Position numbers and translations under genes: made by a program. The notes beneath the pieces are model-generated. The model saw only the letters and a list, made by a program, of their open reading frames with translations. It was not told the origin of the DNA and searched no databases. From assembly GCF_018977255.1 (NCBI RefSeq), contig NW_024704771.1, positions 2,356,001 to 2,420,000 of the forward strand: 64,000 nucleotides of DNA, read 5' to 3'. Within the stretch, counting starts at the first letter, position 1; every line of letters begins with the position of its first letter. Positions 26,700-59,231 of the stretch are shown here, piece by piece. This stretch comes from Callorhinchus milii. Taxonomy: Eukaryota.

Positions 26700-27302
26700 T
26701 TCCAAGGCCCTGGATTGTCATTCAGAACTCTGCAGCTCGTGTACTGTCCCGCACCAGGCTTCGGGACCACATCACTCCCACCCTCGCTCGCCTCCACTGG
26801 CTCCCCATCCTCCAGAGGATTGATTTCAAGATCCTCATCCTCACCTACAAGGCCATTCACGGCCTTGCTCCCTCCTACCTCTCCAACCTACTATCCCCCT
26901 ACCTACCTGCCCGTATCATCCGTTCCTCCGGCTCCGGTCTGCTCCACGTCCCCCGCCCCAATCACCCTACCATTGGTGGTCGGGCCTTCAGCCTCTCAGC
27001 CCCGAGGCTCTGGAACTCTATCCCCCAGTGTCTTCGCCGCTTCCTCCCTCTCCTCCTTCAAGGCCGGTCTCAAAACCTTTCTCTTTGACCGAGCCTTCAG
27101 CTCCCCTCTCGACTCTCTTCCCCCTTCTCACTCCCTCCCATCCCTCCCCTCAACCTAACCATTTCCCCCCTCCTCGTTCCCTCCCCTCCCCTCACCCTGA
27201 CCATATCCCCCCTGCTCGGGTCATGACCCAACTGTGTAGCGCCTTGGGACGTCCTCCTGACGTGAAACGCGCTTTATAAATGGAATCTTGTTGTTGTTGT
27301 TG
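26700..27302 (+). mobile_element. Young L2 (CR1/L2 clade) LINE 3' end
   Basis: Reads IQNSAARVL...DHITPTLARLHWLPILQRIDFKILILTYKAIHGLAPSYL...GGRAFS...APRLWNS, followed by a C-rich UTR and the tail gcgccttgggacgtcc...gtgaaacgcgctttataaatgg(TTG)n. Confidence 0.92.
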
Positions 27303-27717
27303 TCAAGAGTTTGCACCCGAGCTGGGGTTGGATTCTGGAGGGGTGGAGGCTAAGGGACTGAGGTTGGAAGAGGACTGAAGGTGCAGTGAAAGAGGAGGTT
27401 TTGAGACAGACCTTAAAGAAGGAGACCTTGACAACATGTGACAGAGCCCTCAGCCTCTCACTACACCTGCCCACACATCACCCGAAGCTACTTAGTTAAT
27501 GTACATGTCAAATTGTGCTCAATAGACAGGATTGCGAGTGCATTCACTCCATCCAAGATCAATGTCGATTTTGCCTTTCTTTTTTCAACTCAGGTTTCCT
27601 GACCAATAATCCCCCAAATAAAATTGGTAACTCTCTCCATGGCTATTTTGGTGACACTTCTGGTCATTAACTGGATTCACGGGGTCACTCAGGAAATTTC
27701 CCAATTTGCCGCATACA

Positions 27718-28050
27718 AAAACAACAACAAGATTCCATTTATAGAGCGCCTTTCACGTTGGGAGGACGTCCCAAAGCGCTGGACAGTTGGGTCAGGACCC
27801 GAGCAGGGGGGAAATGGTCAGGGTGAGGGGAGGGAAGGGAGGGAGTGAGGAAGGGGGAAATGGTCAGGGGGAGGGAAGGGAGGGGGCGAGGAGGGGGGAA
27901 ATGGTCAGGGTGAGGGGAGGGAAGGGAGGGAGCGAGGACGGGGTAGAGAGTTGAGAGGGGAGCTGAAGGCACGGTCAAAGAGAAAGGTCTTGAGACCGGC
28001 CTTGAAGGAGGAAAGGGAGGAAGCGGCGAAGGCACTGGGGGTTAGAGTTC
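27718..28050 (-). mobile_element. Young L2 3' end (inverted relative to 27000-27302)
   Basis: ORF 27739-28035 peptide is nearly the same as 27028-27279. (CAA)n plus an L2 tail on the plus-strand left end. Confidence 0.88.
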
Positions 28051-29493
28051 CAGAGCCATACCCAGTCTGCCCCAGACCAAGGACCCATCAGCGTCTATTC
28101 AGAGGAGAGAGGATTGAGTTCAAAATCTTCATCCTCAACTTCAAGGACCCTCCATGGCTACCAAATTCCTACCTCTGTGACCCGCTGACCCCATATCATC
28201 CTGTCCTTTCCCTCCGGCTTGCTTCACATTCCCCGCCCAGCCTGACCGACCATTTGTAATCGGGCCTTCAACCTTTCTGCCCTCACCTTTTTGAACTCCG
28301 TCCCATATTCCTTTGCCTTGGCCCATCCATTGCCTCCTTCAAAGTATGTTTCAAGAACCTCCTCTTCGACCGAGCCTTCAGCCACCCTCCCTACCTTCCA
28401 CCCTCCCCGATCCCGACCCACAGCTTGGGTCCAAATCCCTGACTGTCCAGTGCCTTGGGCCATCCTCCCGATGTGAAAGGCACTTTACAAATGTAATTTT
28501 GGTTTGTATTGTTTTCAGGTGGGTTGTGAAGGTTTCCTTCTTCAAGGTCTGTCTCAAAATCTCCCTCTTTATCATGTCTCACTATGTGTAATTTACTGAT
28601 TGATGTTGAGACATCGGAAAGGTCTTGCAAGGGGGAGTGTCATGGGCATATTGTTTCTCAGGGATCTCCTATCTTTGATGAGCTACGTTTAAAAAAATAT
28701 TTAATTTATTTAAGCTACAAAATATTAGGTATAAGTGGTATTCTGTAACAAAATAGTGCCAGAGATATCACACACTCTTGTAGAAATATACATCTATACT
28801 AATACAGAAAACAATTCTGACTGTGTGTCTGTCCGCTAATAAGACAACAACCAATTGACGTAGAAATATGCTTTATACTTCATGGGAAAGGTCTAGGGTG
28901 TGTCATGGGAAAATTGCTTAGAAGGATCTCAAATTGTTATATAAAGTAAAATAATCTAATATAAAGTATAATAATCCTTGCATTTGATATAATGCTTTTC
29001 ACATCTTCTAGAGGTCTCAAAGCCTTCACAGAATATACTGTTAAATGAATTTACTATATATTCATGCACAAAATGCACATATATAGTACAGATTATATTA
29101 ATAATGTGATATGAAGTATAGCAATCCAATATAAAGTATAATTATCTAATATGAAGTACAATGATTTAATATGAAGTATAACAATATAATATAAAGTATA
29201 ATACTGAAATCTACATTCCATATTCGATGCTTTGGTCACTCGTGTAGCTGCAACGAGTACATCCCTACACTATATCACACATAGCACCCCTGCACTGTGT
29301 CAGCTAGTTATTAATAAGTGTAAAGCCACGTGAAAATATTCCCCACGTATTTTGCTTTCTTAATCCCAACAGAGGCAACTCGGGCAATGCTTTCAAATTC
29401 AGAACGGTTGAGCAAGGTTTAATGTAAACAGAATCCACTTCAAGGGTTAATGTAATCTCTTCCCAGGCGGGGAATTCACAACATGGAGATCCT

Positions 29494-29800
29494 TAATAAT
29501 CCTTGCATTTGATATAGCGCTTTTCACGTCGGGAGGACGTCCCAAAGCGCTTCACAGAACATACAGTAAAGTGAATTGACTGTATATTTGTGGGCGAACG
29601 CGGCAGCCAATTGCGCACAGCAATGTCCCACAAACAGTCGTAGATTGAAAATGACCAATTTATTATTGTTTTGTTTTTTGGAGGGATTATTATTAGGTGT
29701 GTGGAGTAAGGAAACTTGCCCAAGGTTTCGCCCTGCCTGGAATTGAACTCAGGTCTCTCGCTTGCAAAGCGAGTGCTCTAACCACTGAGCTACAGGACTC
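29494..29800 (-). mobile_element. Same SINE family, young copy
   Basis: Reverse complement is nearly identical to 2934-3258. Confidence 0.9.
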
Positions 29801-30179
29801 CTTGGGTCAGACTATCCAAAGGGGAAGTGAAAAGTCAAGTCAGACCGCGATGGTGAGCAATGAAGTAAAAATAAACAGCGGCTGGAAACCGAGGCTAAAT
29901 GCAGAGGTTGTGAATGTTGAAGAATAATTGGTGAGTGAGGTTTGGCCTGAATTAGCCTGCCTTCCCCCTGCCACCACTTCTAAGAATGGGTTAAATAAAC
30001 GAGGAGTCCTGTAACTCTCCTCACAAGCGAGAAGACGTGGTTTCGATTCCTGGGCAGGGAGAAATGTTTGGAAAGTTTCCTTACTCCACACACACACCTC
30101 TGTTTACTGAGCAGAAAGTAGCAACCCAGTTGTCAGGAGTTTTAAAATAGTTTTATCAAACAAATGTGCCATGTTACAA

Positions 30180-30800
30180 GTTAATAAATTCCTTACTGCT
30201 ACAAGGATAGACTGAATAGGTTAGGCCTTAATTTGCTTGAGGGGAGACATTTAATGGGGCCCTATGTTTAAAATTCTAAAAGGTGACCATAAATAAGCTG
30301 TTCTCACTGGTTGGGGATTACATAACCAGGGGACACAAATATATATACATTTGTCAGCCAAGGTCTGACACATGCGGACACCCAACACAGTGCTTAAGCT
30401 GAGATTTGCATCCATCCCACCGACACATGGAAACCCCAGAGATAGATTGTTGGAATGGATTGTACAGTCTCTCCCTGGAGGGACACATCCCACTTACATA
30501 ATTCCAGATACTATCAGGCGCAGGTTGGCAAGAGCCAAGGCTTGGGGAACCCATAGTGTATGTTGGGGTAACTGCTGGAGTCTAACCAGTTAAAACTACA
30601 TAGCTTGCCATTGATATCACTGTCTGGCAAACGTTCCCGCTGCGTGTCCAGCTTGGACCATACTACCTGATAGGCCTTTGGCTGTAGGGTTAACAGGAGC
30701 TGAGAGGGAGGATTCCCTGCTGATGAACCAGGCCGGGCTGGGCTGCCATGAGCAGTGGCCTGGAATACTACAGACCCTCCTCGCTTAGGAACCGGACTAG
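30180..30800. repeat. Unclassified dispersed repeat (copy; inverted near-identical copy at 61745-62090)
   Basis: Shared motifs gtctgacacatgcggaaacc, gaaatcccagaga.agattgttgg and ggggtaactgctggagtctaaccag recur at about 2740-3470, 26550-26660, 42690-43020, 61745-61900 and 62990-63620. Confidence 0.8.
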
Positions 30801-32017
30801 AGACCGTCACAGAGGGCTGCTCGATTCCGACATCCCATTGCTAGGCACGTAACCTTGGAACCAGTTCAGCTCCGCGGAGACCTCGTTTATCTCCCCCCAA
30901 GGAGGACAGTCCCACAAAATATTAGGCACCAAGTTATACAGTTGGTTTGAGAGATCTGAAGTGTCTGCTTTCAAAGAAAGTTCCTTCAGGATCAAAGGTT
31001 GAAAAGATAAGTCCAGTTACTGCACAACAAATCCCGAATGTGGCACTTGATGAGATGCGCTGTTTGAGGCGGGAACTCTGTTTAATGAGGAACTGTGTGA
31101 ATGGAAACCACAACTTCAACCAACACAATTTGGCAAAGACGATAAAGTAGACGAGTATTTCACGCAATCCTCAGCACCACACGTAATTATTAAACAGCTA
31201 ATCCTCTGTCTGCTGGCAGTAATGATTTCCTGTTATGAATGACTTGTGAATCCATGTTGCAACCGTGAAAGCCAGTCTTGCCGTCAAAATGCACGTCAAT
31301 TTGTCTTGTTTTAAGTTCAGCAACAAACAGAGCATGAACTATAACATTCTAATAATAAACCAGATACACTCCTCAGATTAACACAGCTATTAATCCAGCA
31401 AACTGCTCCAGTAACCGCCAGCATCAGCAATTGTGGGAAGTTCAATTTATTTACAGAATGTGGTCACCTTGCTATACAGCTGTTACACTGGTACATTGGT
31501 TTTGAGGTAAACAATATACCTTTCTGACCAGCCTGACACGGAACTTGCATCAAAGGATATATTTTGGAACTACAACAAATGCACATATCGTATTTATCCA
31601 GTGCCTTTCACGTCGGGAGGATGATCCAAGGCGATGGATAGTGAAGAGTTTGCATCTGAGCTGGAGGTGAGAATCAAGAGAGGCAGAGGGCAAAGGGAAG
31701 GGAGGATGACAAGAGCAAACTACATGACCAAAGAGGAAGGTCTTGAGATGGACCTTGAAGGAGGCAAGTGAATTAACAATGTTATTTGGGGGATTGTTGG
31801 CCAGGACACCAGGTGAGGAAGAGAGAAAAACTCCCTTCTCTTTTTCAAATAATTTCTTCAAGTGAGCAGCAATTCTTCACACGATGAAGAGGCAAAGGAA
31901 CATTAGTGCAACAAACATGATGTGTTATAACCTAATGGCACAAGAGGCCATTCAGCTCCCCCAGCCCAGCCCAGGCTGCCACAGCTTCTCATCTCCAATA
32001 TCAGTTTCACAATAATG

Positions 32018-32227
32018 TTATACACTCTCCTCTCCATTAGATCTCACTCCAGTTCTGTTTGTGGGTTGTGTCTGAGCCACAGATACACAGTCTGGAGATG
32101 TTGGTGACACAATCCTCCTCCTGAAGGAGAGAAACAGAAACCAGATGATTAATAGTTGTCCCCACTACAGTGTTACCGACTCCGTACTTACCGAGAGGTC
32201 TCTCACATCACAGACTCCTGTGTGTCA
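32018..32227 (-). other. Gene A residual cytoplasmic-tail exons (32192-32227 and 32018-32120), downstream of the stop
   Basis: tttcag|36 nt|gtaagt and ccttcag|GAGGAGGATTGTGTCACC...GTATAA, near-identical to 59633-59658 and 59726-59828 of gene B. Confidence 0.7.
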
Positions 32228-32836
32228 CTGAAACATACATAGGCGGTGGGTGATAGGAGCAGCCTCCGCGCCAGCGTCAAAGATATCCTCACCCCACTCC
32301 CACTGCCCCCCACCTCAGTTTGACCATTGACCCTGTCCCTGTAAAGCACTCCAAGATGTTATCCAATATGAAGGGCATTGTATAAATATAAGTTCTTGTT
32401 TCCTATCCACATGTCTCTGTTTACACAGTAGAACACAGTCGTTAGTCGATTGGCAGATCACTTTCTGGGGTGTGATAATCGCTCGAAAGAAAGAAATAAT
32501 TTGGCCACTCAATCCACAACTGTTTTGGGACACACTGTGCGCAATTGGTTGCCTTGTTTCGCCCACAAGACACACAGACAATTCACTTTATAATATATTC
32601 AGTGAAGCGCTTTGAGACGACTGAACAAGGTGATGAGGTGCATATAAAGTGCAAGGTTTATTTCTTGTTACTGCTGTTTTTTAGGCTGACGTGGAGGATA
32701 ATTTGTTTATCGCCTGTTCAACAAACACTCATGAAGTGATTCAGCAATTGTCTGGAGGATTGTTGGACAGGACAAGACAGTGGGAAGCTGACCTTATCCG
32801 AGTGCTTAGTGTCGTCTCAATACCTTTTGCATCTCA

Positions 32837-32895
32837 TTACGTGGACAACAACAACAGCAGCAGAACAACAAGAATAACCCAGTGATGGCTTCCAC
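32837..32895 (-). CDS. CD2/SLAM-family gene A, terminal hydrophobic (putative GPI-signal) exon
   Basis: tgtttcag acceptor. Reads GGSHHWVILVVLLLLLLST* (TAA at 32839-32837). Homologous to the TM exon at 59123. The total CDS is 28+372+279+59=738 nt (245 aa). Confidence 0.8.
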
Positions 32896-33870
32896 CTGAA
32901 ACAGATTGGAAATGTAATTAATAACAACAATAAAACAATAATCCTTGGATTTGATACAGCGACTTTCAGACAGAGAACCTCTCCAAATGCTTCACATGAT
33001 TTACTGGTAAATTGCAGTGACTGTTTTGTGGGTGAACACGGCAGTCAGTTTGCGCAAACCAATGTCCCACGAGCAGCTGTGAAGTGAATGACTGGATGTA
33101 TCTGGGGGATTGGCAGCCAGGACACCGAGAGAGAGAAACTCCTTCTGTTTTGCTGCAGGATCTTTAACTTCCGTCTGAACAGGCACAGACAAGACATTAA
33201 TTTCACAACTCATCCAAAGGACGGCACCTCCAAACAGCACTGAATTGCAGTGTCACCTGAGACAGGAGTCCCAAACCCTGATGCGGGGGCTTCAATCCAC
33301 AACCTCTGACTCAGAGGCAAGAGTGTGACTGATTGAGCCCGGATGACGCACAATTATACACCAATTAGCCTCCATCCCTCCTGCCCCCTCCCCAACCTTT
33401 TGGCAAAGATCAAGTGTAGCATCTATAATAACAATAATGATCCTTGCATTTGATATTGCACCTTATCACATCTTTGAGACGTTATTCAGGATTCTCTTGA
33501 GATGATATTAAGTCGGTAAAGCCAAATAATATTATTAAAATCAGCGGTATTGTAACATTACAATACATTTACGCAATCAGCACAATTGAGATCATATTAC
33601 CTGATCCCAGCTTCTGTTGCAACTCAGTCAGTTGCTCTTCTCTGAACCTCTGCCCTAATTACACACTTCCACTTCCTTTTATAACAGTAATATAACTGTT
33701 TCGAAAAATGTGGCTGTGTTGTTTCTACACAGCTGTGCTGAAAGCTGGTGCTGCTTATCCTGACCTCTGATCTGTTTTTTTTTACTTCCTCAATCTTGCA
33801 ATTATAGCAAGATTTTGCTTCCCCACAAAATTAACCAAATCTTGTTTCCATCTACTGCAACGTTAAAAGT

Positions 33871-33978
33871 ACTCCACCCAAGAATGTAAACAACTCCACC
33901 CAAGAATGTAAACAACTCCACCCAAGAATGTAAACAACTCCACCCAAGAATGTAAACAACTCCACCCAAGAATGTAAA
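33871..33978. repeat. 22-bp perfect tandem repeat x5
   Basis: actccacccaagaatgtaaaca at 33871, 33893, 33915, 33937 and 33959. Confidence 0.95.
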
Positions 33979-33980
33979 GA

Positions 33981-34198
33981 AAAACAGAAGTCGCTGGGAA
34001 CACTCAGCAGGTCAGGCAGTATTTGTGGAGAAAGGTAAGTGAGTCAATGTTTCGGGTCATTGACCCTTCGTCAGAACCTGTGGTCCAGTCCGTTAGCTTC
34101 AGTTCTGACGAAGGGCCGTGGAGTCGAAACGTTGACTCACTTTCCTTTCTCCATAGATGCTGCCTGACCTGCGGAGTGTTCCCAGCGACTTCTGTTTT
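33981..34198. mobile_element. Penelope-like element inverted terminal (pseudo-LTR) pair
   Basis: Two antiparallel ~97-nt arms (33981-34077, 34102-34198) of ctgacgaaggg...gaaac.ttgactcact..cctttctcca.a.atgctgcctgacctgc.gagtgttcccagcgacttctgtttt. Confidence 0.75.
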
Positions 34199-34633
34199 GG
34201 CTTCAGATTTCCAGCACTTGCAGTATTTTTTGTTTTGTCTGTACAAGAATGTTCCTGACTCATCAGTTGCTCACTTTCATCCTGGCATCTAGTCCCTTAA
34301 ATGATTTTAATATTACTACTAATAGCTTGTTTAATAGCCCTTATACATAACCCCACCATCATCACACTTGAGCAATTATTCTCTACAGTGTCTCTAAGCA
34401 CTTCACAGAATATACTGTCAAGTGGGCGAAACACAGCAGCCGATTTCATATAGTGACATCCCACAAATAGTCATGGATTGAATGACCACATTATTTATTT
34501 GTTTGAACGTTTGGTTTTTGTTTATTAATTTATTTTTGACTGATGAGAGTGTGGTGTGTATCTGCCTAACGCATGGATTGGATTTCCTGATGTCAGGTTG
34601 TGTCAGTGTAGGATTGTTCTCTCTCTCTCTCAC

Positions 34634-34912
34634 CTGCTGAGCTGCTGTCAGGGCACAGATCTGCAGTGACTGGTTTGCTGGCTGTCTGGCTGACCGGGTT
34701 GTGAGCCACACACGTGTAGCTGTCTCGCTCCCGCCCCGTGACGTTGCTCAGATGTAATGTGGACCCATTGTAGACGACTGTGTTACCAGCAAAGCCCGAG
34801 ACTTTCTCCCAGTGAAACAGTGGGTTTGTACCGTTGGGAGCAGAGCAGGTCAGAGTGGCAGCTGGCACAGAGCAGTTAGTGGTTACCTTCACCACGGGCT
34901 GGGCCACGGGCT
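34634..34912 (-). CDS. CD2/SLAM-family gene A, IgC2 exon
   Basis: tgtttcag acceptor and GCAG|gtgaga donor, 279 nt, phase 1-1. Reads EPVAQP...NCSVPAATLTC...W...YTCVAHNPVS...DLC, a four-cysteine C2 domain with the NPVS motif characteristic of the CD2/SLAM family. Confidence 0.93.
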
Positions 34913-35314
34913 CTGAAACACACAATGTCACATCAATGTCAATATCACACAGTAAATGTCATTCTTTACACAACTGTTTGCCGAGTCCGGTGTCCGGCTC
35001 ATGTGGAAACCCATCACTGTACTTGTGATGGTCCAAACCAGACTGAGAGCATCTCTGCGAAGAGAAGGTGACATAAAAATACTTTTCCTGTCAATTAATA
35101 CAGCACTTAATGACATAATAATATTCACTGTATTGGATATAATGCTTTATCATGTTGTTCAAACAACGAGAACAACTTATCTATGTGGCGCCCCAGCATA
35201 GAGTACCAGAGGCATCTCAGAGGGCTTCACAGAATATATTGTAAACTCTCTGCTGCGTTCATCCACAAACACAGAGCCACCACAACTTATTGTGAAATCT
35301 TGTGAAGTGCTATT

Positions 35315-36457
35315 ACTTGTAAGAAAGATAGAAGCCCATGGTATAAAAGGGAGAGTGGCAGTGTGGATCCAGAACGGGCTGAGTGACAGAAAGCAGAGAG
35401 TGGTGAACGGCTGCTTTTCTGACTGGAGGGAAGTGTACAGTGGTGTCCCCCAGGAATCAGTATTAGGACCACTGCTCTTCTTAACATACATAAATGATCT
35501 GCACTTGGGTATAGCAACACCATTTCCAAGTTTGCGGATGACACAAAGTTAGGTAGGGAGGTACACAGTGAGAAGGATAGGAGTCAACTGCAGGAAGACA
35601 TAGACAGAACGGTAAACTGGGCAGACACATGGCAGAGGAGTTTCAATGTGGAGAAATGCAAAGTAATGTATTTTGGAAGAAAGAATGAGGGGAGGCAATA
35701 TAGGCTGGTAATACAATCTTAAGGGGGGGGTGAAAGAACAGAGAGACCTGGGGGTTCAGGTAAATGAATCCTTGAAGGTGGCAGAACAGGGAGATAAGGC
35801 TGTAAAAAGGGCATATGGGATACTTGGCTTTATAAATAGGGACATAGAGTATACAAGAGTCAGGAGGTTATGATTAACTGATATAAACACTGGTTAGGCC
35901 TCAGTTAGAATACTGCGCCCAGTTCTGGGCACCACACTACAGGAAGGATGTTAAGGCATTGGAAAGGGTACAGAGGAGATTTACGAGGCTGGTACCAGGA
36001 ATGAGGGACCTTGATCATGAGGAAAGGCGAGAGAGGTTAGGATTATTCTCATTGGAGCAGAGAAGGTTACGAGGAGACCTCTTCGAGGTCTTCAAAATCA
36101 TGAGGGAATTTGATAGGTTAAAAAGGGAAAAACTGTTTCCACTGGTGGGTGTGTCGGTGACTCGAGGTCACAGATTCAAAATAGTCTCTAAAAGAAGCCG
36201 AGGGGAGGTGAGAAGGAATTTTTTCACGCAGCGAGTTGTTCGAATCTGGAACACATTGCCTGAAAGGGCGGTCGAGGCCAATTTGATAACTACTTTTGAA
36301 AACGTGGTGGATGGGTATTTGAGGAGGACGGGTTTACAGGGTTATGGGGAAAGGGCTGGGGAGTGGGATTGACATTACATTGCTCTATTCAAAGACCCAG
36401 CACAAACTCGATAGGTCGAATGGCCTCTTTTTGTGCTGTGCAATTCTATGATTCTAT
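35315..36457 (+). mobile_element. CR1 LINE 3' fragment
   Basis: RT C-terminal motifs (SKFADDTKL, LERVQRRFTRL, LFSLEQRRLRGDL, FFTQRVVRIWN) and a ttctatgattctat tail. Closely similar to 48840-49980. Confidence 0.93.
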
Positions 36458-37066
36458 AAGACGTTTGGATGATGCTGTGCACAATCGGCTGCTGCATTTC
36501 ACCCACAAAACACTCACAAAAATCTACACATACCTGTGAAGTGAGTGAGGATTTTCATCCAGTGAATTCCTGGCCAGGACACCGGGAGAGAGAAACTGCT
36601 TTTCTTTTCAAATAGGCCGTGGGATTTTTAACATCCAGAGGCACAGACAGGACCTTAGTTTAATGTCTCATCCAAAGGACATCACCTCCAACAACAGCAC
36701 CTCCAACAACAGCCTCCAGCAACAGAATGTGCTGTGAAGTGAATTGACTATATATTTGTGGACGAAACGCAGCAGCCAATTGCACACAGCAGTGTCCCAC
36801 AAACAGTCATGGATTGAGTGACCAAATTATTATTTTTTTCTTGAGGGATTACTATCAGGCTTGAGGACTAAACTTGCCCAAGGTTTTGCCCTGCCAGGAA
36901 TCGAACCAAGATCTCTTGCTTGTGAGACGATTGCTCTAACCACTGAGCTACAGGACTCCACAACTATTAAGTGTTATTGGAGTATAATTCCAACGTGGGG
37001 TCTTGAACCCACAAACTTCTGATTCAGAGACGAGAAGGAGCCTAATCCAGCCAGACCAGTACTCAC

Positions 37067-37438
37067 CAAAGACTTTCAGATGAAATGTAAGCTCATCTCT
37101 CTGCCGCAGCACCTTTCCCAGGTAGTTTGTTTGGATGCGATATTCTCCACTGTCTTCCATGTGGACATCTTTAAGTAACAAAGAGCGATTGACTGTGAGC
37201 TGAACCCGGTCTCTATAGAGAGGATGGACAATATGTGCATTTCCTATAGAGAAGGGCTGATCAGAATTCCAGCCGAGGATTTTAATTGAGTGTGGGCTTT
37301 CCCGGCGAGCTGTCACTTCGTATTTCATGTTGTTGTCGTGAATTACAGGGAACTGGACATCTTGACCGACGGAGAGATTGGTGACTGTGTCCGGGATGGC
37401 CCTCACAGCCGGGCTGCCCAGTCTGACACAGAGCAGGA
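37067..37438 (-). CDS. CD2/SLAM-family gene A, signal end + Cys-less IgV exon
   Basis: ctctttcag acceptor and TTTG|gtgagt donor, 372 nt, phase 1-1, open. Reads LLCVRLGSPAVRA-IPDTV...LYRDRVQL...SLLLKDVHMEDSGEY...LKVF. The V domain lacks the canonical disulfide, as in CD2/SLAM N-terminal domains. Confidence 0.92.
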
Positions 37439-38817
37439 CTGAAAGAGGAGAAACAGCAAAAATTTACAAACAACAGCAACAACTTGCACTTATATAGCGC
37501 CCTCCACACAGGGCAGCATCTCAGAGCGCTTAACAGTGGTGGAGCCTAACTCCGAGCCGGGGGGATACAAGGGCTGTAAGCACAGTTGAAGAGGAAAGTC
37601 TTCAGGCGAGACTTGAAGGAGGGGAGAGTGGGGGCAAGGCGGAGGGATTGAGGGAGAGTGTTCCAGAGTTTTGGGGTCTGCTGCCGATCTCTGATGGTGG
37701 GTGCAAGGGACGAGTGCCAGGAGGTCAGAGTGGTAGGGAGCTGCCAGGGAGTGAAGGGATTTGAATACGAGTGTGAGGAACCTGAAGTTGATCTGTTTGT
37801 TAATGGGGAGTCAGTGGAGCCTGAGCCAGAACTGGTTATTGTGGGTACGGGCTGTGGTGGAGGGAGGACAGCTGGGGACCAAACTGGACGCCGAGGTTGA
37901 ACACTGGTTCGGTGCATCTGAGGGAGAGCCCCGGGAGGTTGAGGAGTGAAGACATTTAAACTGCAGAGGTGAAGCACAAGACAACTGAGAGGTGGGACCT
38001 GTTGGTGAGTCTAACGCGAGTGGACAAAAAAAAAGCAGCAACAGCTTTTCTTCAGCTCCTTAACTCAAACCAAATAGATTCTGACATTAATTCCTCTGGA
38101 CATCATCCCTTTCCAGGACTGAACAATAACTTTGATCAATATTGCCAACCCCATCAGCTTTATTTCCTACCCTATCCCTGCTAAATATATTTTATTCAAT
38201 CATGGAATCCTGTAGCTCAGTGGTTAGAGCACTCGCCTCGCAAGAGAGAGACCTGAGTTTGATTCCCACCAGGACGAAATGTTGGGCAAGTTTTCTTATT
38301 CCATACGCCTCTGTTTACCAGGCAATAAATAGGAACCCGGGTGTTAATCGATTAGCAGATCGCTTTTCCAGAGGTAATAATCCCTCCAAAAAACAATCAT
38401 AAATTAGTCATTTTAATCCATGACTGTTTGTGGAACATCGCTGTAAGCAATTGGCTGCCCGTATCACCCAGAAAATATATGGTCAATACGGTTCACAATA
38501 TATTCTGTGAGGCGCTTTGAGACGTCTCGAAGATATGATAAGGTGCTATATCAAATGCAAGGATTATTATTGTTGCTATATTATTTGTAAAGGAAGTGCA
38601 TGCAATTCATGGTGTGGGGAAGGGGGAGAAAGAGAGAGGGGGGGACACACAAATGCTGTATCTGATCACTGTAAATCAATGGCATATTAATCTTTGCAAG
38701 GACAGGCAGTTTAAAAAACTGTAGCCTTCAATGCAAAGTCTTGCTACTCTGTAAAAAGGAGATCTACCACTGCGGCACCAGAAAAAACCCAAACTTCCAT
38801 ACCCGGGTGAATATTAC

Positions 38818-38845
38818 CTGTAATAATTCTGAAGAGAGTCACCAT
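38818..38845 (-). CDS. CD2/SLAM-family gene A, leader exon
   Basis: ATG GTG ACT CTC TTC AGA ATT ATT ACA G|gtaata = MVTLFRIIT, phase 1. The homologous context (ccaaa-atggt...attattacag|gtaat) occurs at 55392-55420 in the paralog. Confidence 0.8.
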
Positions 38846-41087
38846 GTTTGGGGATCGGGGAATCTCCAGCCGACATCCTCTTACATTTGATAACTTTGCG
38901 GTTGTCTGTGCGCAAATTGGCTGCCGCACTCGCCTACAAAACACAGAGTTAACACACTTTACAGTGTATTCTTTGAAGAGGTTGAAATTATTATTATGAT
39001 TAATATTGTCACCCCATTTGGCATTTGATCAAAGACGCTCATGTTTGAAAAGTGAACAGAGGAAACATTCAATATTTCCGAGACGTTCTCATTGTAAGGA
39101 AAGAGTTCAAATAAAATGATAACGCTGTGGAAATGTACTCTGTAGGAATGAACACGTTGATGTGACTCAGAGTCTCCAACTCTATTCACAAGAAACAATT
39201 CAACGGTTAATGCTTCAACACATACAATGATACACGCAGTAAAATTCAACAAAACCGTTCAATCATTAGAGCACTCGTTTCGCAAGCGATTCGATTCCCG
39301 GCCGGGCAAAATCTTGCGCAAGTTTCCTTACTACACACTCCTGATAATAATCACTCATGAAAAAAACTAATAATAAAAAAATTTTGGTCACTCAATCCAT
39401 AGCTGTTTGTGAGACGCTGCTGTGTGCAATTGACTGCAGCATTTTGTCCAGAAATATACAGTCAATTTACTTTAAGGTCTATTCTGTGAAGCGCTTTGAG
39501 ACATCTTGAAGACATGAAAAAGCGCTGTATCAAATGCAAAGGTTATTATCATTATTATTACCCAATTCCATTGAGAAAGTCGCTGACCACCAGCTGTTCA
39601 CAACTGTTCCTCCTGCACTATTCCAAAGTGACATCTTTCTTTTATGTGTTTCTAACTCGCCTCCCCTTGTCAGAGAGACGGCTCCCACCCTTCGCTGGCT
39701 GCTGGAGACCTTGAACAAGCTCTTTTCCGGGAAAAGAACTGATAGGGAAACAGAGAGATAAACAGTATTTTGGGGGAGGGTTCTACCATGGATTCTTAGT
39801 GTGAGATAAGCAGATGTGCACGAGGGCATTTCTCCTTCTGAGGCCACTTGTTTTCACATCTGGCTCAAGGACATGATCAATTAATCTCAGAGGAGTGTCC
39901 GCCTGCTCAAGAGAATATGAAATCAGACTTGTGCCAGGGTCAAATGACTTCACTAACACTGGTTACCGCCCTTAAGCTAATCATTAAAACACACAACATT
40001 GTTCCTACCCCGGTAACTAAGGAATCCAATTCTAAAAAGACTATGAGTTTTGGTTACATTCCAAAAAGTATATCAAAGATTGGAATAGGTATTAGCAGTT
40101 GATTGACTGTCCTTTGATCAGCAAAAATAACCTTATCTTGAAACTGGTTGAGACTCTTCGATGATCAAAGAAGTTGAGTTATTGCTGACTTTTCTATACG
40201 AGCTGCGAACACAAGGAAGTTGGAGAGAGAGATGATCAAGAAGCCTGAAACACAGACAGCGGAAGCTCCAGAGACAGGTAACTGATCATTATCACTACCC
40301 ACTTCTCTACTTGATTGATGCCTTATCCAATAGATTTTGTGTCAAAGTTGTGTTATTATTATTTGACAATCTAAATACAACAACAAAATTACATTTAGAG
40401 CGCGTTTCACGTTGGGAGAACGGCCCAAAGCTGAACAGTCAGGTGTTGCGGCCCGGGTATGGGGGAGGGGTGGTGTAGGGGTGAAGGAAGGCAGAGAGGT
40501 AGGAGGGCGACTGAATCATAGAATCATAGAATCATAGAATGTTACAGCACAGAAGGAGGCCATTCGGCCCATCGAGTCTGTGCGGCTCTTTGACAGAGCA
40601 ACTGACTTTTATTAACCCCACTCACCAGCTTTCTCCCCATAACTCTGCAAACCCGTCTTCTCCAGATACCTATCCAGTTCTCTCTTAAAAGCTGTTATCG
40701 AATCGGACTTCACTACCCTTTCGGGCAGATCATTCCAAATTCTAACAACTCGTTGAGTGAAAACATTTCTTCTAACCTCTCCTCTGCTTCTTTTGGTAGA
40801 TATCTTAAGACTGAAGGCACGATCGAAGAGAAGAGTCTTGAGACCAGCCTTGAAGGAGGCAATGGAGGAAGCGAGACGAAGGGATCGTGGGATGGAGTTC
40901 CAGAGTGTGAGGTGCTGGCCCGAGACACCCGGCCCACCTCAGGGTCCACAAGACCCCGGCCCAGCCTGCAGCTGCCGGTCCCTGCCTCTGGCTACCGGCC
41001 TCGATCCCCGGGAGACTAGCCCTGTGACTCCCTGCCACTGCCTGACTTACCTTCCGTGAGTCCCGCTCGGTTTTACTTGGGTTTACG

Positions 41088-43694: not shown

Positions 43695-44923
43695 TATAGA
43701 GTTCTCAGCAGAACTCACAGAGAACAATCTACACAGAAGCCACGAGTACACTGGGCCCTTCACATAACATGTGTAAACATTCAGAGGACTCCCTGTCCCC
43801 AGTGATTGGTCTGCCCTGCAAGGTCCTGCCAATGAGCCAGGCTGGGCTGGGCTGGGCTGGGCTGGGCTGTCAGCAGCAATGACCTGGAACCCTGCGGACC
43901 TGCCTGGCTCAGGAACCAACTCCTGCTCTGTATCACACTGGTTGCTCTGCACTGTGTCGCACTGGTTGCCCTGCACTGTGTCGCATTGGTTGCCCTACAC
44001 TGTGTCACACTGGTTGCCCTTCACTGTATCAAACTGGTTGCCCTGCACTGTGTCACACTGGTTGCCCTTCACTGTATCAAACTGGTTGCCCTGGACTGTG
44101 TCACACTGGTTGCCCTGCACTGTGTCGCACTGGTTGCCCTGCACTGTGTCACACTGGTTGCCCTTCACTGTATCAAACTGGTTGCCCTGCACTGTGTCAC
44201 ACTGGTTGCCCTTCACAGTATCAAACTGGTTGCCCTGCACTGTGTCACACTGGTTGCCTTGCACTGTGTCGCACTGGTTGCCCTTCACTGTATCAAACTG
44301 GTTGCCCTGCACTGTGTCACACTGGTTGCCCTGCACTGTGTCGCACTGGTTGCCCTGCACTGTGTCGCACTGGTTGCCCTGCACTGTGTCGCACTGGTTG
44401 CCCTGCACTGTGTCGCACTGGTTGCCCTGCACTGTGTCGCACTGGTTGCCCTGCACTGTGTCGCACTGGTTGCACTGCACTCTGTCGCACTGGTTGCCTT
44501 GCACTGTGTCGCACTGGTTGCCCTGCACTGTGTCGCACTGGTTGCCCTGCACTGTGTCGCACTGGTTGCCCTGCACTGTGTCACACTGGTTGCCCTGCAC
44601 TGTGTCACACTGGTTACACTGCACTGTGTTGCACTGGTTGCCCTGCACTGTGTCGCACTGGTTGCCCTGCACTGTGTCGCACTGGTTGCCCTGCACTGTG
44701 TCGCACTGGTTGCCCTGCACTGTGTCACACTGGTTGCCCTGCACTGTGTCACACTGGTTGCCCTGCACTGTGTCACACTGGTTGCCCTGCACTGTATCGC
44801 ACTGGTTGCCCTGCACTGTGTCGCACTGGTTGCCCTGCACTGTGTCGCACTGGTTGCCCTGCACTGTGTCGCACTGGTTGCCCTGCACTGTATCGCACTG
44901 GTTGCCCTGCACTGTGTCACACT

Positions 44924-45726
44924 TGTTAGAAAATAAAATCAGCCAAATCTGTAAGGAAATAACGCTAATTCCTCTAACCAGATATCAGACTGTTTTATTA
45001 TAATTCGTTCGTTATTCACCAATATCCCGATGGGTCAGACCATACAATCAACAGATCTTATAACGGAATAACACCACTATAGATATCTCGGTTGAAGAGT
45101 TCAACACTGTGTCTTTCCAGCACACAAGTTTGATTCTTCATGTTTTCAGTCTTCTTGCTTACAGCTTTCAATCTTCCATCTGATATCCTCAGTCTTAGTG
45201 TTTCCAGCTCTCAGTCTTCCATCTCTGTACCCTTGTCTCCGCAGCCCGGGACGGTCCATCTCCCGTATCCTTGTCTCCGCGACCCGGGACTGTCCATCTC
45301 CCGTATCCTTGTCTCCGCGACCCGGGACGGTCCATCTCCCGTATCCTTGTCTTCGCAGCCCGGGACGGTCCATCTCCCGTATCCTTGTCTCCGCGACCCG
45401 GGACGGTCCATCTCCCATATCTTTGTCTCCGCGACCCGGGACGGCCCCGTACACAAAGTTATCGGAACTCTTATACCAATGTTCATCCAATCATGGTGCC
45501 GACATTAGATCACCGCACCGTCGAAATCATGCCGGGTTCACGTGAACACCTCATGGGGTGTACGTGCCTCACACACACAAACACACTGTCCTTGAGACAG
45601 TCCGTCATCTCGTGTACGTGTAGGGAGTTTCAGTCCAGCTGCCCACAACACACTTAACTTAAAAGTTAACCCGTTCGCAACATCTATTATGATTCTAACA
45701 TTATACAAAAAGTGTAAATTCTAACA
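44924..45726 (-). mobile_element. Solo LTR (803 bp) with 4-bp TSD
   Basis: Termini TGTTAGAA...TTCTAACA (perfect 8-bp inverted repeat), flanked by CACT (44920-44923, 45727-45730). Minus-strand AATAAA at about 44994-44999 and ATTGGTATAAGAG at about 45469-45481. Confidence 0.85.
45210..45450. repeat. 38-bp tandem repeat inside the LTR (~6 units)
   Basis: CCCGGG recurs at 45245, 45283, 45321, 45359, 45397 and 45435. Confidence 0.95.
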
Positions 45727-56520: not shown

Positions 56521-56870
56521 CACTGCAATACCTCAGTCTTTCACTTCTGCTCTGTGTCAGAAGCTGTGATCCAGTGATGTGGGCAATCCCAGGCACTGTC
56601 ACTAATCTCTCCATTGGGAACGATATCTGGTTCCCTGTAACTCACTTCGACAGCCAGTACATAGTGACTGTTCTACACAAACATCCAATTCCCACCGAGA
56701 TTATCAGATGGATTTTAACAGAGTCGGAGATGTCAAAGATTGTGAACACCACCTACAAAGACAATGACAAGCGCTAAAGGACACGACTGTAAGCAACTCT
56801 AATACTTTCAGTGTAAAAGGTTACTTGAGTTTGTGAAACCCGGTGATAAATTAAGCCAGACATCGATATT
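56521..56870 (+). pseudogene. CD2/SLAM-family gene B, disrupted IgV exon
   Basis: LLCVRSCDPVMWAIPGTVTNLSIGNDIWFPVTH...IVNTTYKD aligns with gene A. Only 11 nt then separate YKD from the shifted-frame LKDTTVSNSNTF (33 nt in A), giving TAA at 56775-56777. The 3' boundary is uncertain. Confidence 0.75.
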
Positions 56871-57464
56871 CAGGTTAATACTTTTGTTTTCTAAATTAAA
56901 ATACCATTGTATCAGAGTTACAATATGCTTCCTGCAACGTGTAGTTCCAAACTATCGAGTGATCATGATCTGCAGACGGGCAAAGCGCGGACAAGGCAGA
57001 GGGATTGAGACAGAGTTCCAAAGGTTCGGAACATAGTGGCTGAAAGATGTCGATGGTGCAGCAGAGGGGATGAGTGGCGGGCAGAAGGCTGAAGCCAGAT
57101 GAGCTAAGGAGATGAGTAGAGGAGTGGGGTGTGAGGTCGAGGAGGTGGAGAGGCAAATTAATTTGTGAGTGTGAGGATCTTGAAATGAATCTGATAACAC
57201 TGTTTAGAAACAGGCCATTGGGAATGACGTACAAAGTAGCTGGATGCTGTGATGGGGGAACGGAAGGACAGGTGTTCTGTAGGTCAGAAAGGTGTAATAA
57301 GAATGTAATTTGCTGTTGTTAGCAAGATGCAATAAATGTGACGCTAAAGACAAATGTCCTTGGAGGTGGCGTCCTTTGATTGAGACGTTAAACCACAATC
57401 CCGTCTGTGCTTGTGGATGTTAAAATTCCTGTGGCGCTACACAATAATAATAATGCATTTCATA

Positions 57465-57792
57465 TAATAATAATAATAATAATAATCCTTGCATTTGATA
57501 TAGTGCTTTTCACATCGGGAGGACGTCCCAAAGCGCTTCACAGTTCACACTGTAAAGTGAATTGACTGTATACTTGTGGGCGAACGTGGCAGCCAATTGC
57601 GCACAGCAATGTCCCACAAACAGTCGTAGATTGAAAATGACCAATTTATTATTGTTTTTTTTTGGAGGGATTATTATTAGGCTCTGTGTGGAGTAAGGAA
57701 ACTTGCCCAAGGTTTGGCCCTCTGCCTGGAATTGAACTCAGGTCTCTCACTTGCAAAGCGAGTGCTCTAACCACTGAGCTACAGGACTCCAC
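57465..57792 (-). mobile_element. Same SINE family, young copy
   Basis: Reverse complement of the consensus. Further, more diverged copies lie at about 7500, 8500-8880, 12000-12360, 14390-14770, 21950-22255, 26190-26530, 36720-36962, 38205-38575, 39260-39560, 50130, 53160-53475, 62330-62660 and 63145-63530. Confidence 0.9.
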
Positions 57793-58273
57793 AAAGCGCC
57801 TCAACACATCGTTGAGATGCCTCAAAGCGCTTTACGGTGTATTGTAAAGTGCCAACAAGTGAAATGCAGCAAATTACACACTGCAGTAACCCACAAACAG
57901 TCACGATTGAGTGACCACATTTGTTTTGGAAAGGAATATTAGCCCCGGAAAGTGATGGGCCAATTGGAAAAGATAAGCGAGTTTCTCTCTCCCGGTGTCC
58001 TGGCCTGCAATCCTTCAGACAAAAATTCTCACTCACTTCACGGTTGTTCGTGGGACATTGCTGTAGGTTGCGTTCATCTTTGGATGCACAGGCAGTAACA
58101 TGGCTTTCCTCTTGGCTTTAGCAAAGTGGGAAGGTGACCTTACTCATAACAACAGCAAGTGACATGGACAACAGTTGCCGCACGAGCCGGACACCCGACT
58201 GAGCAAACAATTGTATGTAAAGAGTGACATTTACTGTGTGATATTGACATTGATGTGACATTGTGTGTTTCAG

Positions 58274-58551
58274 AGCCCGTGGCCCAGCCCGTGGTGAAGT
58301 AACCACTAACTGCTCTGTGCCAGCTGCCACTCTGACCTGCTCTGCTCCCAACGGTACAAACCCACTATTCCACTGGGAGAAAGTTTTGGGCTTTGCTGGT
58401 AATACAGTCGACTACAATGGGACTACATTTCATCTGAGCAACGTCACGGGGCGGGAGCGAGACAGCTACACGTGTGTGGCTCACAACCCGGTCAGCCAGA
58501 CAGCCAGCGAGCCAGTCACTACAGATCTGTGCCCTGACAGCGGCTCAGAAG
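58274..58551 (+). pseudogene. CD2/SLAM-family gene B, IgC2 exon with 1-nt deletion
   Basis: About 90% aa identical to gene A C2 by eye, but 278 nt. It has gtgaagtaacc vs gtgaaggtaacc in A, giving AAG TAA immediately. Confidence 0.85.
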
Positions 58552-58699
58552 GTGAGAGAGAGAGAGAACAATCCTACACTGACACAACCTGACATCAGGG
58601 CATTTAACAGGAAATTCAATACACGAGGGAGAAAGTACACTGGATTTTAGCCAAATTGGTGAGGGGGCAGGAGGGATGGAGGCTAATTGGAGTATAATT

Positions 58700-59100
58700 G
58701 TGCATCATCCTGACTCCAACAGTCACACTCTTACCTCTGAGTCAGGGTTTGGAACTCTTGTTTCAGGCGACAATGCAATGCAGTGCTCGGGGGGTATCAA
58801 GTTGGAGATGCCGTCCTTTGGATAAGTTCTGAAATTAATGTCTTGTCTGTTCCTGTTCACACGGACATTAAAGATGCTGTGGTAGAACAGAAGGGAGTTT
58901 CTCTCTCGGTGTCCTGGCTGACAATCCCCCAGATAAATCCAGTCATTCACTTCACAGCTGCTTGTGGGACATTGGTTTGCGCAAATTCGCTGCCGTGTTC
59001 ACCCACAAAACAGTAAATCATGTGAAGCGTTTGGAGAGGTTCTCTGTCTGAAAGTCGCTGTATCAAATCCAGGGATTTTTGTTTTATTGTTGTTATTGAA
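58700..59100 (+). mobile_element. Older Deu-domain SINE (SacSINE1-like) in the gene B C2-TM intron
   Basis: gccgtcctttggat...gtcttgtctg...cggtgtcctggc...gctgcttgtgggacattggtttgcgcaaatt, a Deu-domain-like core. The equivalent copy lies at about 32920-33350 (minus) in gene A; others are at about 56100-56430 and 36470-36720. Confidence 0.7.
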
Positions 59101-59122
59101 CTACATTTCCAATCTGTTTCAG

Positions 59123-59231
59123 GTGGAAGGCATCGCTGGGTTATTCTTGTTGTTCTACTGTTATTGCTGTCTGTGTCACTTGTTGTTGGTATGAAGCACA
59201 AAATGACCTCGAGACGAAGCTCAGCATTGGG
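59123..59231 (+). pseudogene. CD2/SLAM-family gene B, transmembrane exon
   Basis: tgtttcag acceptor. Reads GGRHRWVILVVLLLLLSVSLVVGMKHKMTSRRSSALG with donor GG|gtgagg (phase 2): a 19-aa hydrophobic span plus basic residues. Confidence 0.8.

Follow-up and report, generated by a model that had tools for sequence, protein, structure and literature searches.

A truncated transmembrane exon and a candidate GPI-attachment signal in a SLAM/CD2-like immunoglobulin gene of the elephant shark

The gene considered here, gene A, lies on the minus strand of a 64-kb window (the whole stretch of DNA analysed) from the holocephalan Callorhinchus milii, a source in keeping with the probable cartilaginous fish named in a preliminary description of the sequence. 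It belongs to a cluster of Ig genes on scaffold MU249860.1 (2.15–2.42 Mb). Four phase-1 exons with AG acceptors and GT donors (coding parts 38845-38818, 37438-37067, 34912-34634 and 32895-32837, the last ending at the stop) give a spliced ORF of 738 nt and a protein of 245 aa, which is 100% the same sequence as RefSeq XP_042200780.1 (P0085 below), labelled ‘hepatocyte cell adhesion molecule-like isoform X2’. This exact match and the RNA joints described below agree with the uninterrupted four-exon reading originally made from the letters alone. The features of gene A and of its neighbour gene B are as follows, a slash marking the exon boundary in splice sites.

38818..38845, minus strand: exon 1, coding part; ATG and first 9 signal-peptide codons, with the 5′UTR further upstream (a contig from RNA sample X2 has 283 nt upstream of exon 2)
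37067..37438, minus strand: exon 2; remaining signal peptide and Cys-less V-set Ig domain
34634..34912, minus strand: exon 3; 4-Cys C2-type Ig domain, then the stalk ...LCPDSSSA
32824..32895, minus strand: exon 4 as in mRNA, 72 nt; truncated transmembrane (TM) exon encoding GGSHHWVILVVLLLLLLST, TAA at 32839-32837, 13 nt of UTR
32846..32851, minus strand: approximate place where alignments with the long TM exon show 10 nt missing; 1 nt more is missing about 20 nt downstream
32822..32823, minus strand: new GT donor (AAAAG/GTATTG), 13 nt past the stop and absent from long-form paralogs (RNA joints, alignment)
32796..32797, minus strand: dead ancestral donor (alignments)
30601..32120, minus strand: exon 5, the former cytoplasmic-tail exon; 3′UTR in the 245-aa isoform, whose transcript end may reach about 30140
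56523..59231, plus strand: gene B, pseudogene copy of a TM-type paralog (sequence reading and alignments)
V exon of gene B, plus strand: diverged, ends in a stop near 56777
58274-58551, plus strand: C2 exon of gene B; a 1-nt deletion after 58299 leads to an in-frame TAA
59123-59231, plus strand: TM exon of gene B; long form with a GG/GT donor

Gene A is a real, intact, transcribed surface-protein gene with two Ig domains. Its 245-aa product consists of a signal peptide, a Cys-less V domain, a 4-Cys C2 domain and a tail ending in CPDSSSAGGSHHWVILVVLLLLLLST at the stop. The candidate N-terminal ER signal peptide, MVTLFRIITVLLCVRLGS, is hydrophobic, conserved in all paralogs and helical at residues 2-13 in the AF2 model. 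Residue counts in the spliced protein bear out the architecture first proposed: Cys is absent from the stretch between residues 14 and 146, the C2 cysteines fall at 147, 156, 201 and 220, and six N-x-S/T sequons are present (N30, 93, 146, 160, 182, 190). In a 21-member family alignment C156 is invariant, C201 nearly so, and C147 and C220 are found in most members; the four probably pair into two disulfides. The exon 2 product matches the Pfam V-set at E=7.6e-4, below the gathering score, and forms a beta-sandwich in the AF2 model with pLDDT mostly >85, while the exon 3 product matches Ig_3 at 6.4e-9. Neither product matched Pfam SLAM (PF06214), Receptor_2B4 (PF11465) or C2-set (PF05790) at E<=1.

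RNA contigs from three samples carry the joints 37067/34912, 34634/32895 and 32824/32120, and so confirm both the exon use and the stop. The exon 2/exon 3 joint is found in contigs of samples X2, X3 and X4, and the exon 3/exon 4 joint in those of X1, X2 and X3. An X2 contig (1373 nt, depth 65) spans exons 2 to 5, an X3 contig (677 nt, depth 58) spans exons 2 to 4 plus the first 27 nt of exon 5, and shorter X1 contigs span the exon 3/exon 4 and exon 4/exon 5 joints. Exon 4 shows zero variants in the RNA contigs, including at the TAA (pieces 32823-32892 in X2 and X3), and 4/4 words sampled from it are present in five RNA runs from two studies. Overlapping contigs cover exon 5 (31757-32119, 30724-31786 and 30601-31721). 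The coding part of exon 4 ends at 32837 as the preliminary description had it, but the true 3′ end of the exon is 32824, set by the new donor; likewise the old cytoplasmic exon does remain downstream of the stop, but it is spliced on as 3′UTR, a joint that had been missed. The stop of the 245-aa isoform lies 13 nt before the last exon junction. Two other splicing candidates were rejected: a donor CAC/GTAATG that would include the TAA is used by no contig, and a 36-nt block with splice-like flanks at 32192-32227, considered as a cytoplasmic mini-exon, has stops in 3/3 frames and is likewise used by no contig.

Skipping of exon 4, which had been counted in advance as evidence against a membrane-anchor reading, does occur. 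The skipped isoform encodes a 251-aa protein that is predicted to be soluble, with 32120-32044 specifying GGLCHQHLQTVYLWLRHNPQTELE and a stop in a frame other than the ancestral one (RRIVSPTSPDC..., judged by gene C, P0086). RefSeq ranks this form as isoform X1, and it is the dominant contig in RNA sample X4 (depth 105). Contigs containing exon 4 dominate in X2 and X3, and exon 4 is also present in X1, X6 and X15. The sequence ‘TVYLWL’, a candidate ITSM within exon 5, is confined to a non-ancestral frame and was discarded.

Alignment of the TM exon with the long exons of three paralogs (genes B, C and D) reveals a net loss of 11 nt in gene A, which shifts the frame into the TAA, and a change of the old donor from GG/GT in B, C and D to GG/AT in gene A. 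The preliminary description's view of a derived frameshift and stop, with decay of the donor, is thus upheld against three long forms. Its in-window reference for the ancestral state was gene B, which has the long TM exon and the GG/GT donor as described, but gene B is itself a pseudogene; the intact TM paralogs sit outside the window. These encode proteins of 293–301 aa with cytoplasmic tails of about 45 aa, and the closest, P0086, has an ectodomain 93% identical to the gene A protein. A second gene, A2, lies 190 kb from gene A and carries the same truncated exon (102/102 nt identical). The two copies are inverted relative to each other on one scaffold and have different partners (intact gene C versus dead gene B), and with this separation and arrangement they are unlikely to be uncollapsed haplotypes. 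The cluster contains the ancestral version (C, D), the derived one (A, A2) and a dead one (B) side by side, and the mechanism can be read from sequence.

The C-terminus left by the truncation fits the published layout of a GPI signal, in which small omega and omega+2 residues are followed by a spacer and a hydrophobic tail from about omega+9/+10 (PMC2571997, PMC10491789), albeit with a short hydrophobic run. Under the published layout rules (small residues at omega and omega+2, no Pro at omega+1), D222/S/S, S223/S/S, S224/S/A and S225/A/G qualify, and the run begins at W232, which is omega+10, +9 and +8 for D222, S223 and S224, respectively. The run is Leu-rich, with a mean Kyte-Doolittle value of about 4, and comprises 12 strongly hydrophobic residues, or 14 including ST; nothing follows ST, and there is no cytoplasmic tail. 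The best 19-residue Kyte-Doolittle window scores 1.88 in gene A versus 2.4–3.7 in its TM relatives. The GPI reading is weakened because the run falls below the typical 15–20 residues (PMC10491789) and is extremely hydrophobic; for GPI addition to be efficient, hydrophobicity reportedly has to lie within narrow limits (PMC10491789, citing Galian 2012). When only the C-terminal 41 residues were used as query, the language-model atlas search listed CD48 and Thy-1, but its scores of 0.65–0.69 are not meaningful. On this layout the gene A product is plausibly GPI-anchored.

The cluster looks SLAM/CD2-like, with no clean separation from CEACAM or HEPACAM. Relatives of the gene A protein were gathered by a HMMER search of representative proteins. 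The resulting family profile aligns over both domains to the CD48/CD2 chimera, SLAMF6 and CD58, and it scores CEACAM1 at 5e-16, the CD48/CD2 chimera at 3e-15 and SLAMF6 at 4e-13. A single-sequence search of the PDB placed CEACAM1/CEA best (7.5e-10 to 6e-8), with SLAMF6 at 2e-5; the V domain alone matched SLAMF5 best (0.0077). In a Foldseek search with the two-domain ectodomain HEPACAM came top (4e-15, 25–27% identity), with SLAMF7 at 2e-14. The nearest language-model neighbours of P0085 are ‘CD48 antigen’ clusters (0.96), a soft result that may partly reflect protein length, and those of the TM paralog P0086 are TM-type SLAMF6/8/9 and its own HEPACAM-like cluster. The Cys-less V plus 4-Cys C2 architecture is that of the CD2/SLAM family named at the outset, but membership is not clear-cut: in two of the searches CEACAM1 and HEPACAM equal or outscore the SLAM members, and the ITSM (TxYxx[VI]) is absent from the tails of the closest TM paralogs (P0086, P0090). 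More distant relatives in the family alignment carry IEPTYxx[IL]-type motifs. The ITSM is not universal in the CD2/SLAM family, CD2, CD58 and SLAMF8/9 being without it. CEACAM A/B domains are C2-type with two Cys and a single disulfide, versus four Cys in gene A; the similarity to CEACAM1 is real but non-exclusive. The RefSeq ‘HEPACAM-like’ name is an automatic best-hit label, and HEPACAM/GlialCAM, at 416–418 aa, is longer than the elephant-shark TM paralogs.

Among known systems, the GPI-linked CEACAMs (human CEACAM5-8, and those of New World monkeys and swine) share a disulfide-less N-terminal V domain followed by C2-type domains. In the CEACAM family deletion and a stop in TM exons created GPI signals repeatedly and independently (PMC2832619), and gene A resembles these genes in its small deletion and stop inside the TM exon with cytoplasmic exons left behind (PMC2832619), its own GPI linkage being putative. 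The CEACAM exons lost 1 or 3 nt, compared with 11 nt here; the new donor of gene A, unlike the CEACAM arrangement, still joins the old tail exon as 3′UTR; and the lineage, a holocephalan, is different. CD48 (SLAMF2) and CD58, which are the GPI-anchored representatives of the CD2/SLAM family, also share with gene A a disulfide-less V plus C2 ectodomain of about 220 aa and a C-terminal hydrophobic signal with no cytoplasmic tail. Gene A is not, however, an ortholog of CD48 or CD58: mouse CD48 shows 23% identity in structural alignment, and since the closest relatives are its own TM paralogs at 93% identity the switch in the anchor appears recent and local. Since the truncation is specific to this lineage, it arose independently of CD48, CD58 and CEACAM in mammals, as the preliminary description had supposed.

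We propose that a net 11 nt disappeared from the TM exon before A and A2 diverged, and that the resulting frameshift into TAA removed the latter half of the membrane-spanning segment together with the entire cytoplasmic tail. The old splice donor would have decayed afterwards, and the new donor 13 nt past the stop retains the old tail exon as 3′UTR, a position that leaves the stop too near the last junction for nonsense-mediated decay. The small residues of DSSSAG, the short polar spacer and the Leu/Val run of 12–14 residues most likely constitute a GPI-attachment signal, with putative cleavage at about D222-S224. The product would then be an ectodomain tethered by lipid and without signalling capacity, comparable to CD48 or the GPI-linked CEACAMs, and skipping of exon 4 would yield a secreted form. 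Gene structure, stop, splicing and expression are established from the data, as are the derived nature of the truncation and the existence of two copies of it; GPI attachment and a ligand or decoy role we infer, and we give the reading as a whole, from truncation to lipid-anchored ectodomain, new donor and skipped secreted form, a probability of roughly 0.55.

A functional gene whose tail is no GPI signal is the chief competitor: the 245-aa form would be a short, tail-less membrane stub, or would be retained in the ER and degraded, and the relevant product would be the secreted decoy or ligand made by skipping exon 4. The dominance of that form in X4 and its RefSeq rank favour this, as does a run that is short, very Leu-rich and outside the typical 15–20 residues of moderate hydrophobicity (PMC10491789). 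We nevertheless think it unlikely, as contigs with exon 4 are the main form in X2 and X3, the exon is present in three further samples, the small residues and spacer ahead of the run agree with a GPI signal, and the skipped isoform resembles a by-product because its tail is read in a non-ancestral frame. Still less probable, in our view, is that A and A2 are young transcribed pseudogenes in which the frameshift inactivated a receptor that now drifts neutrally in a birth-and-death cluster. The dN/dS of A versus A2 is 0.70 (11 N, 5 S), a value that cannot be told apart from 1; along the A2 branch there are 8 N and 2 S changes, and two glycosylation sequons have disappeared; coding and intron divergence are about equal (2.2% and 2.5%); and the dead gene B next door shows that pseudogenisation is common in the cluster. 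Set against this, gene A itself has 3 N and 3 S changes since the split (omega roughly 0.3), both copies keep the full ORF, signal peptide, four C2 Cys and all splice sites, which is weak evidence at about 1.4% divergence per lineage, a donor has arisen past the stop that preserves the 3′UTR and avoids nonsense-mediated decay, and several samples give good coverage of the spliced mRNA. Taken together, the substitution data speak only weakly for coding constraint on A and A2. An artefact of assembly or sequencing, hiding a gene with a full TM exon, is an extremely improbable source of the stop: exon 4 is the same in RNA contigs from three samples and two studies (2013, 2015 and 2022), the A2 copy has the identical 102 nt, and nothing in favour of error was found.

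The RefSeq protein model and the evolutionary route were known already, and no new class of mechanism is involved; searches of the literature for elephant-shark SLAM-family or CEACAM genes turned up nothing about gene A, which is plausibly a new instance of the known TM-to-GPI route. The broader proposition, that a holocephalan independently made a CD48-like GPI molecule and a tail-less secreted form from a TM SLAM-like receptor by way of the 11-nt loss and the donor shift, and that the converted gene and its TM partner, arranged head to head, were later duplicated as a unit, falls in our estimate a little short of an even chance. It would represent receptor/decoy (paired-receptor) evolution through TM-to-GPI switching in a cartilaginous fish, a route known from primate CEACAMs. 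The elephant shark genome is among the slowest-evolving vertebrate genomes. Should the tail prove to function as a GPI signal, gene A would offer a dated TM-to-GPI switch outside mammals, and the CEACAM route of a small deletion and a stop in the TM exon would extend to a SLAM/CD2-like IgSF cluster of cartilaginous fish. It would also give comparative immunology a candidate partner, as ligand or decoy, for the SLAM-like receptors of the elephant shark.

Gene A, the two-Ig-domain gene under study, occupies MU249860.1:2,388,044-2,394,845 (GCA_018977255.1), which places the window at 2,356,001-2,420,000 on this scaffold. The minus strand of 32500-39200 was read and each boundary located by script, giving the following coding exons:

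38845-38818, minus strand: exon 1, coding part, ending at a GT donor
37438-37067, minus strand: exon 2, with a TTTCAG-type acceptor and a GT donor
34912-34634, minus strand: exon 3, with a TTTCAG-type acceptor and a GT donor
32895-32837, minus strand: exon 4, coding segment to the stop, with a TTTCAG-type acceptor

Junctions are in phase 1 throughout, and the spliced coding sequence of 738 nt encodes 245 amino acids, from MVTLFRIITVLLCVRLGS at the N-terminus to CPDSSSAGGSHHWVILVVLLLLLLST immediately before the stop. There are six N-x-S/T sequons and, besides C13 of the signal peptide, cysteines only at 147, 156, 201 and 220. Everything in the preliminary description of this protein, namely four phase-1 GT-AG exons, an uninterrupted reading frame, a V domain devoid of cysteine, a four-cysteine C2 domain and six sequons, was recovered. 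Exon 2 has a weak Pfam match to V-set (E=7.6e-4) and exon 3 matches Ig_3/Ig_2. The translation (P0085) is letter-for-letter equal to XP_042200780.1/781.1, labelled 'hepatocyte cell adhesion molecule-like isoform X2', and the protein model is thus already present in RefSeq.

The V exon was found in eight C. milii RNA runs, and contigs from four of these (samples X1-X4, which are distinct from the RefSeq isoforms of similar name) were placed on 32400-38399 and 26950-32949. In X2, a contig of 1373 nt (depth 65) joins exons 2, 3 and 4 to a fifth exon; an X3 contig of 677 nt (depth 58) joins exons 2, 3 and 4 and includes only 27 nt of the fifth, and shorter X1 contigs also cover the joints of exon 3 to 4 and exon 4 to 5. 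The joints lie at 37067 to 34912, 34634 to 32895 and 32824 to 32120. Since these contigs read exon 4 without differences, the TAA is real. The gene and its expression are also real. Exon 4 ends at the donor AAAAG/GTATTG, 13 nt past the stop, and its partner from 32120 begins GAGGAGGATTG; overlapping contigs continue unspliced from exon 5 to at least ~30.6 kb. The old cytoplasmic exons had been said to remain beyond the stop: exon 5 is indeed present, and it is moreover still spliced to exon 4. Nonsense-mediated decay usually follows a 50-55-nt rule, under which a stop only 13 nt before the last junction is not predicted to trigger it. In the introns, interspersed repeats, among them tRNA-like SINEs, at 36600-37000, 38200-38400, 29350-29950 and elsewhere draw contig depths of up to ~1e5-1e6 and dominate the depth tables, but are unrelated to expression of gene A. 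Intron 3 also contains a perfect 22-nt tandem repeat of 4.9 copies (33871-33978).

Skipping of exon 4, which would remove the shortened tail from the product, is also seen. An X4 contig of 747 nt (depth 105) passes straight from exon 3 into exon 5, as in RefSeq isoform X1 (P0087, 251 aa, C-terminus GGLCHQHLQTVYLWLRHNPQTELE), although its C2 part carries substitutions of A2, the near-twin of gene A, so that its gene of origin is not certain. Exon 4 is included in the X1, X2 and X3 contigs, and all four words sampled from it occur in five RNA runs from two studies, X4 not among them. One low-depth X1 contig has T for C on the plus strand at 32823, which is a G to A change on the minus strand at +1 of the new exon-4 donor; with such an allele the donor would be lost, and exon 4 might more often be skipped or the intron retained.

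How the exon came to be shortened can be read from its paralogs. The copy in the window, gene B, had been taken as the transmembrane (TM) reference, and its TM exon does have the long form with a GG/GT donor on the plus strand. Gene B is itself dead, however, with a stop in its diverged V exon and a 1-nt deletion after 58299 that produces an in-frame TAA in the C2 exon, and three further loci of the same scaffold were therefore compared. Gene C (L002; P0086, 293 aa, and P0090, 301 aa) is intact and of the TM type, gene D (L004) also has a long TM exon, and A2 (L001; P0089, 245 aa) has the same C-terminus as gene A, GGSHHWVILVVLLLLLLST. In the five-way alignment the exon is long in B, C and D, whilst A and A2 have in common two gaps, of 10 nt and 1 nt, and a cluster of substitutions in which the TAA lies. 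They also share the new GT donor, as well as GG/AT at the old donor, in agreement with the GT to AT change reported earlier for gene A. Among the more distant relatives from sharks, rays and skates, the usual form is a complete TM segment with a short tail after it. Because B, C and D are long and these relatives are mostly of the full form, the short exon is the derived one, and a lineage-specific truncation in A and A2 is well supported. The TM exon of gene C ends in phase 2, with exon 5 read as RRMESPTAPDC..., and when gene A skips exon 4, the frame in which its exon 5 is read is therefore not the ancestral one.

A distance of 190 kb separates A from A2, and the two are inverted relative to each other. 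Their loci show 97.5% identity over 10.3 kb; exon 4 together with 15 nt on either side matches at 102/102 positions. Each has a head-to-head partner of TM type, C for A2 and the dead B for A, a mirrored arrangement, so that duplication took in the whole pair as one block. Gene B occupies 56523-59231 on the plus strand, continuing to ~62100, as a pseudogene copy with a truncated V exon and an intact-looking long TM exon. By the Nei-Gojobori method, dN between A and A2 is 0.020 and dS 0.029 (dN/dS 0.70; 11 nonsynonymous and 5 synonymous changes), and coding sequence and introns have diverged to about the same extent; between A and C dN/dS is 0.47. When gene C is used as the outgroup to polarise the changes, 3 nonsynonymous and 3 synonymous ones fall on the A lineage and 8 and 2 on the A2 lineage, too few to tell weak purifying selection apart from neutrality.

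Two descriptions of GPI signals bear on the resulting tail. In one, small residues occupy omega-1 to omega+2 (omega being the attachment residue), the spacer spans omega+3 to omega+9, and everything from omega+10 onward is hydrophobic tail (PMC2571997); the other requires that omega+1 is not proline and omega+2 is small, with a spacer of 8-12 residues and 15-20 hydrophobic residues (PMC10491789). For D222, S223 and S224 alike the omega+2 residue is small, and W232 falls at omega+10, +9 and +8 respectively, giving a predicted cleaved propeptide of 21-23 residues; only ST follows the hydrophobic run. The proposed GPI layout thus holds for the attachment residues, the spacer and the missing cytoplasmic tail. 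What counts against it is that the hydrophobic run, although it reaches the C-terminus, has only 12 strongly hydrophobic residues, below the typical 15-20, and is very Leu-rich. The narrow hydrophobicity range needed for efficient anchoring (PMC10491789) also counts against it. A conventional membrane span is unlikely, as the best 19-residue Kyte-Doolittle window scores 1.88 vs 2.4-3.7 in TM relatives. Soft support for GPI comes from language-model neighbours: those nearest to P0085 are 'CD48 antigen' clusters (0.96). For P0086, with a 93% identical ectodomain, they are its own HEPACAM-like cluster and TM-type SLAMF6, SLAMF9 and SLAMF8, and the sets listed include no CD48. GPI anchoring of the 245-aa form is accordingly plausible from the sequence, with a probability that we put at roughly 0.55.

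The assignment to the CD2/SLAM family stands in part. The Cys-less V and four-Cys C2 domains fit, whereas CEACAM1 or HEPACAM lead some searches and the nearest paralog of TM type lacks an ITSM. A single-sequence PDB search placed CEACAM1 and CEA best (~1e-9), with SLAMF6 at 2e-5. A profile of 21 family members gave 5e-16 for CEACAM1, with the alignment limited to the back half of V plus C2; both domains were aligned for a CD48/CD2 chimera (3e-15), SLAMF6 (4e-13) and CD58 (9e-13). The V domain alone matched SLAMF5 best (E=0.0077). The AF2 model (pLDDT 84.8) had HEPACAM as top structural match (4e-15), followed by SLAMF7, SLAMF1, SLAMF5/8/9, CD2, 2B4 and CD48. Relatives collected by a V-exon HMMER search over 1.8 billion representatives, with subsequent cluster look-ups, carry automatic names that vary between SLAMF5/7/9-like, HEPACAM-like, Ly-9-like and CEACAM-like. 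'SLAM/CD2-like' is thus a fair description of gene A, and membership is not proven.

Elsewhere in the window, an isolated plus-strand fragment at 46158-46323 resembles the start of the family V exon (~50% identity to residues 8-60). Next to it are 24-nt minisatellites, with 42 copies at 43922-44927 and 19 at 45727-46191; these account for the GC richness and AT skew of the 44-46 kb bin. In the cluster of paralog D, a Tc5/DDE_1 (pogo-like) transposase gene (L004 21548-23068) lies ~8 kb downstream of that gene.

We found no paper on gene A or on elephant-shark SLAM-like genes. Cartilaginous fish are reported to possess homologs of the CEA family (PMC4079198, PMC5112662). GPI-linked CEACAMs are documented to have arisen by a deletion plus a stop in the TM exon, with separate origins in swine and in both Old World and New World monkeys (PMC2832619), and are also predicted in Xenopus (PMC5112662). 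In a different SLAMF7-like gene of C. milii, on a 20-Mb scaffold, the annotated isoforms P0076/P0077 also stop partway through the TM segment (...LWMFSIIGASISY), whereas their sister isoforms retain all of it together with a tail. Products with a shortened TM segment may recur in the family of gene A, which is itself a further case of a route already known and not a new kind of system.
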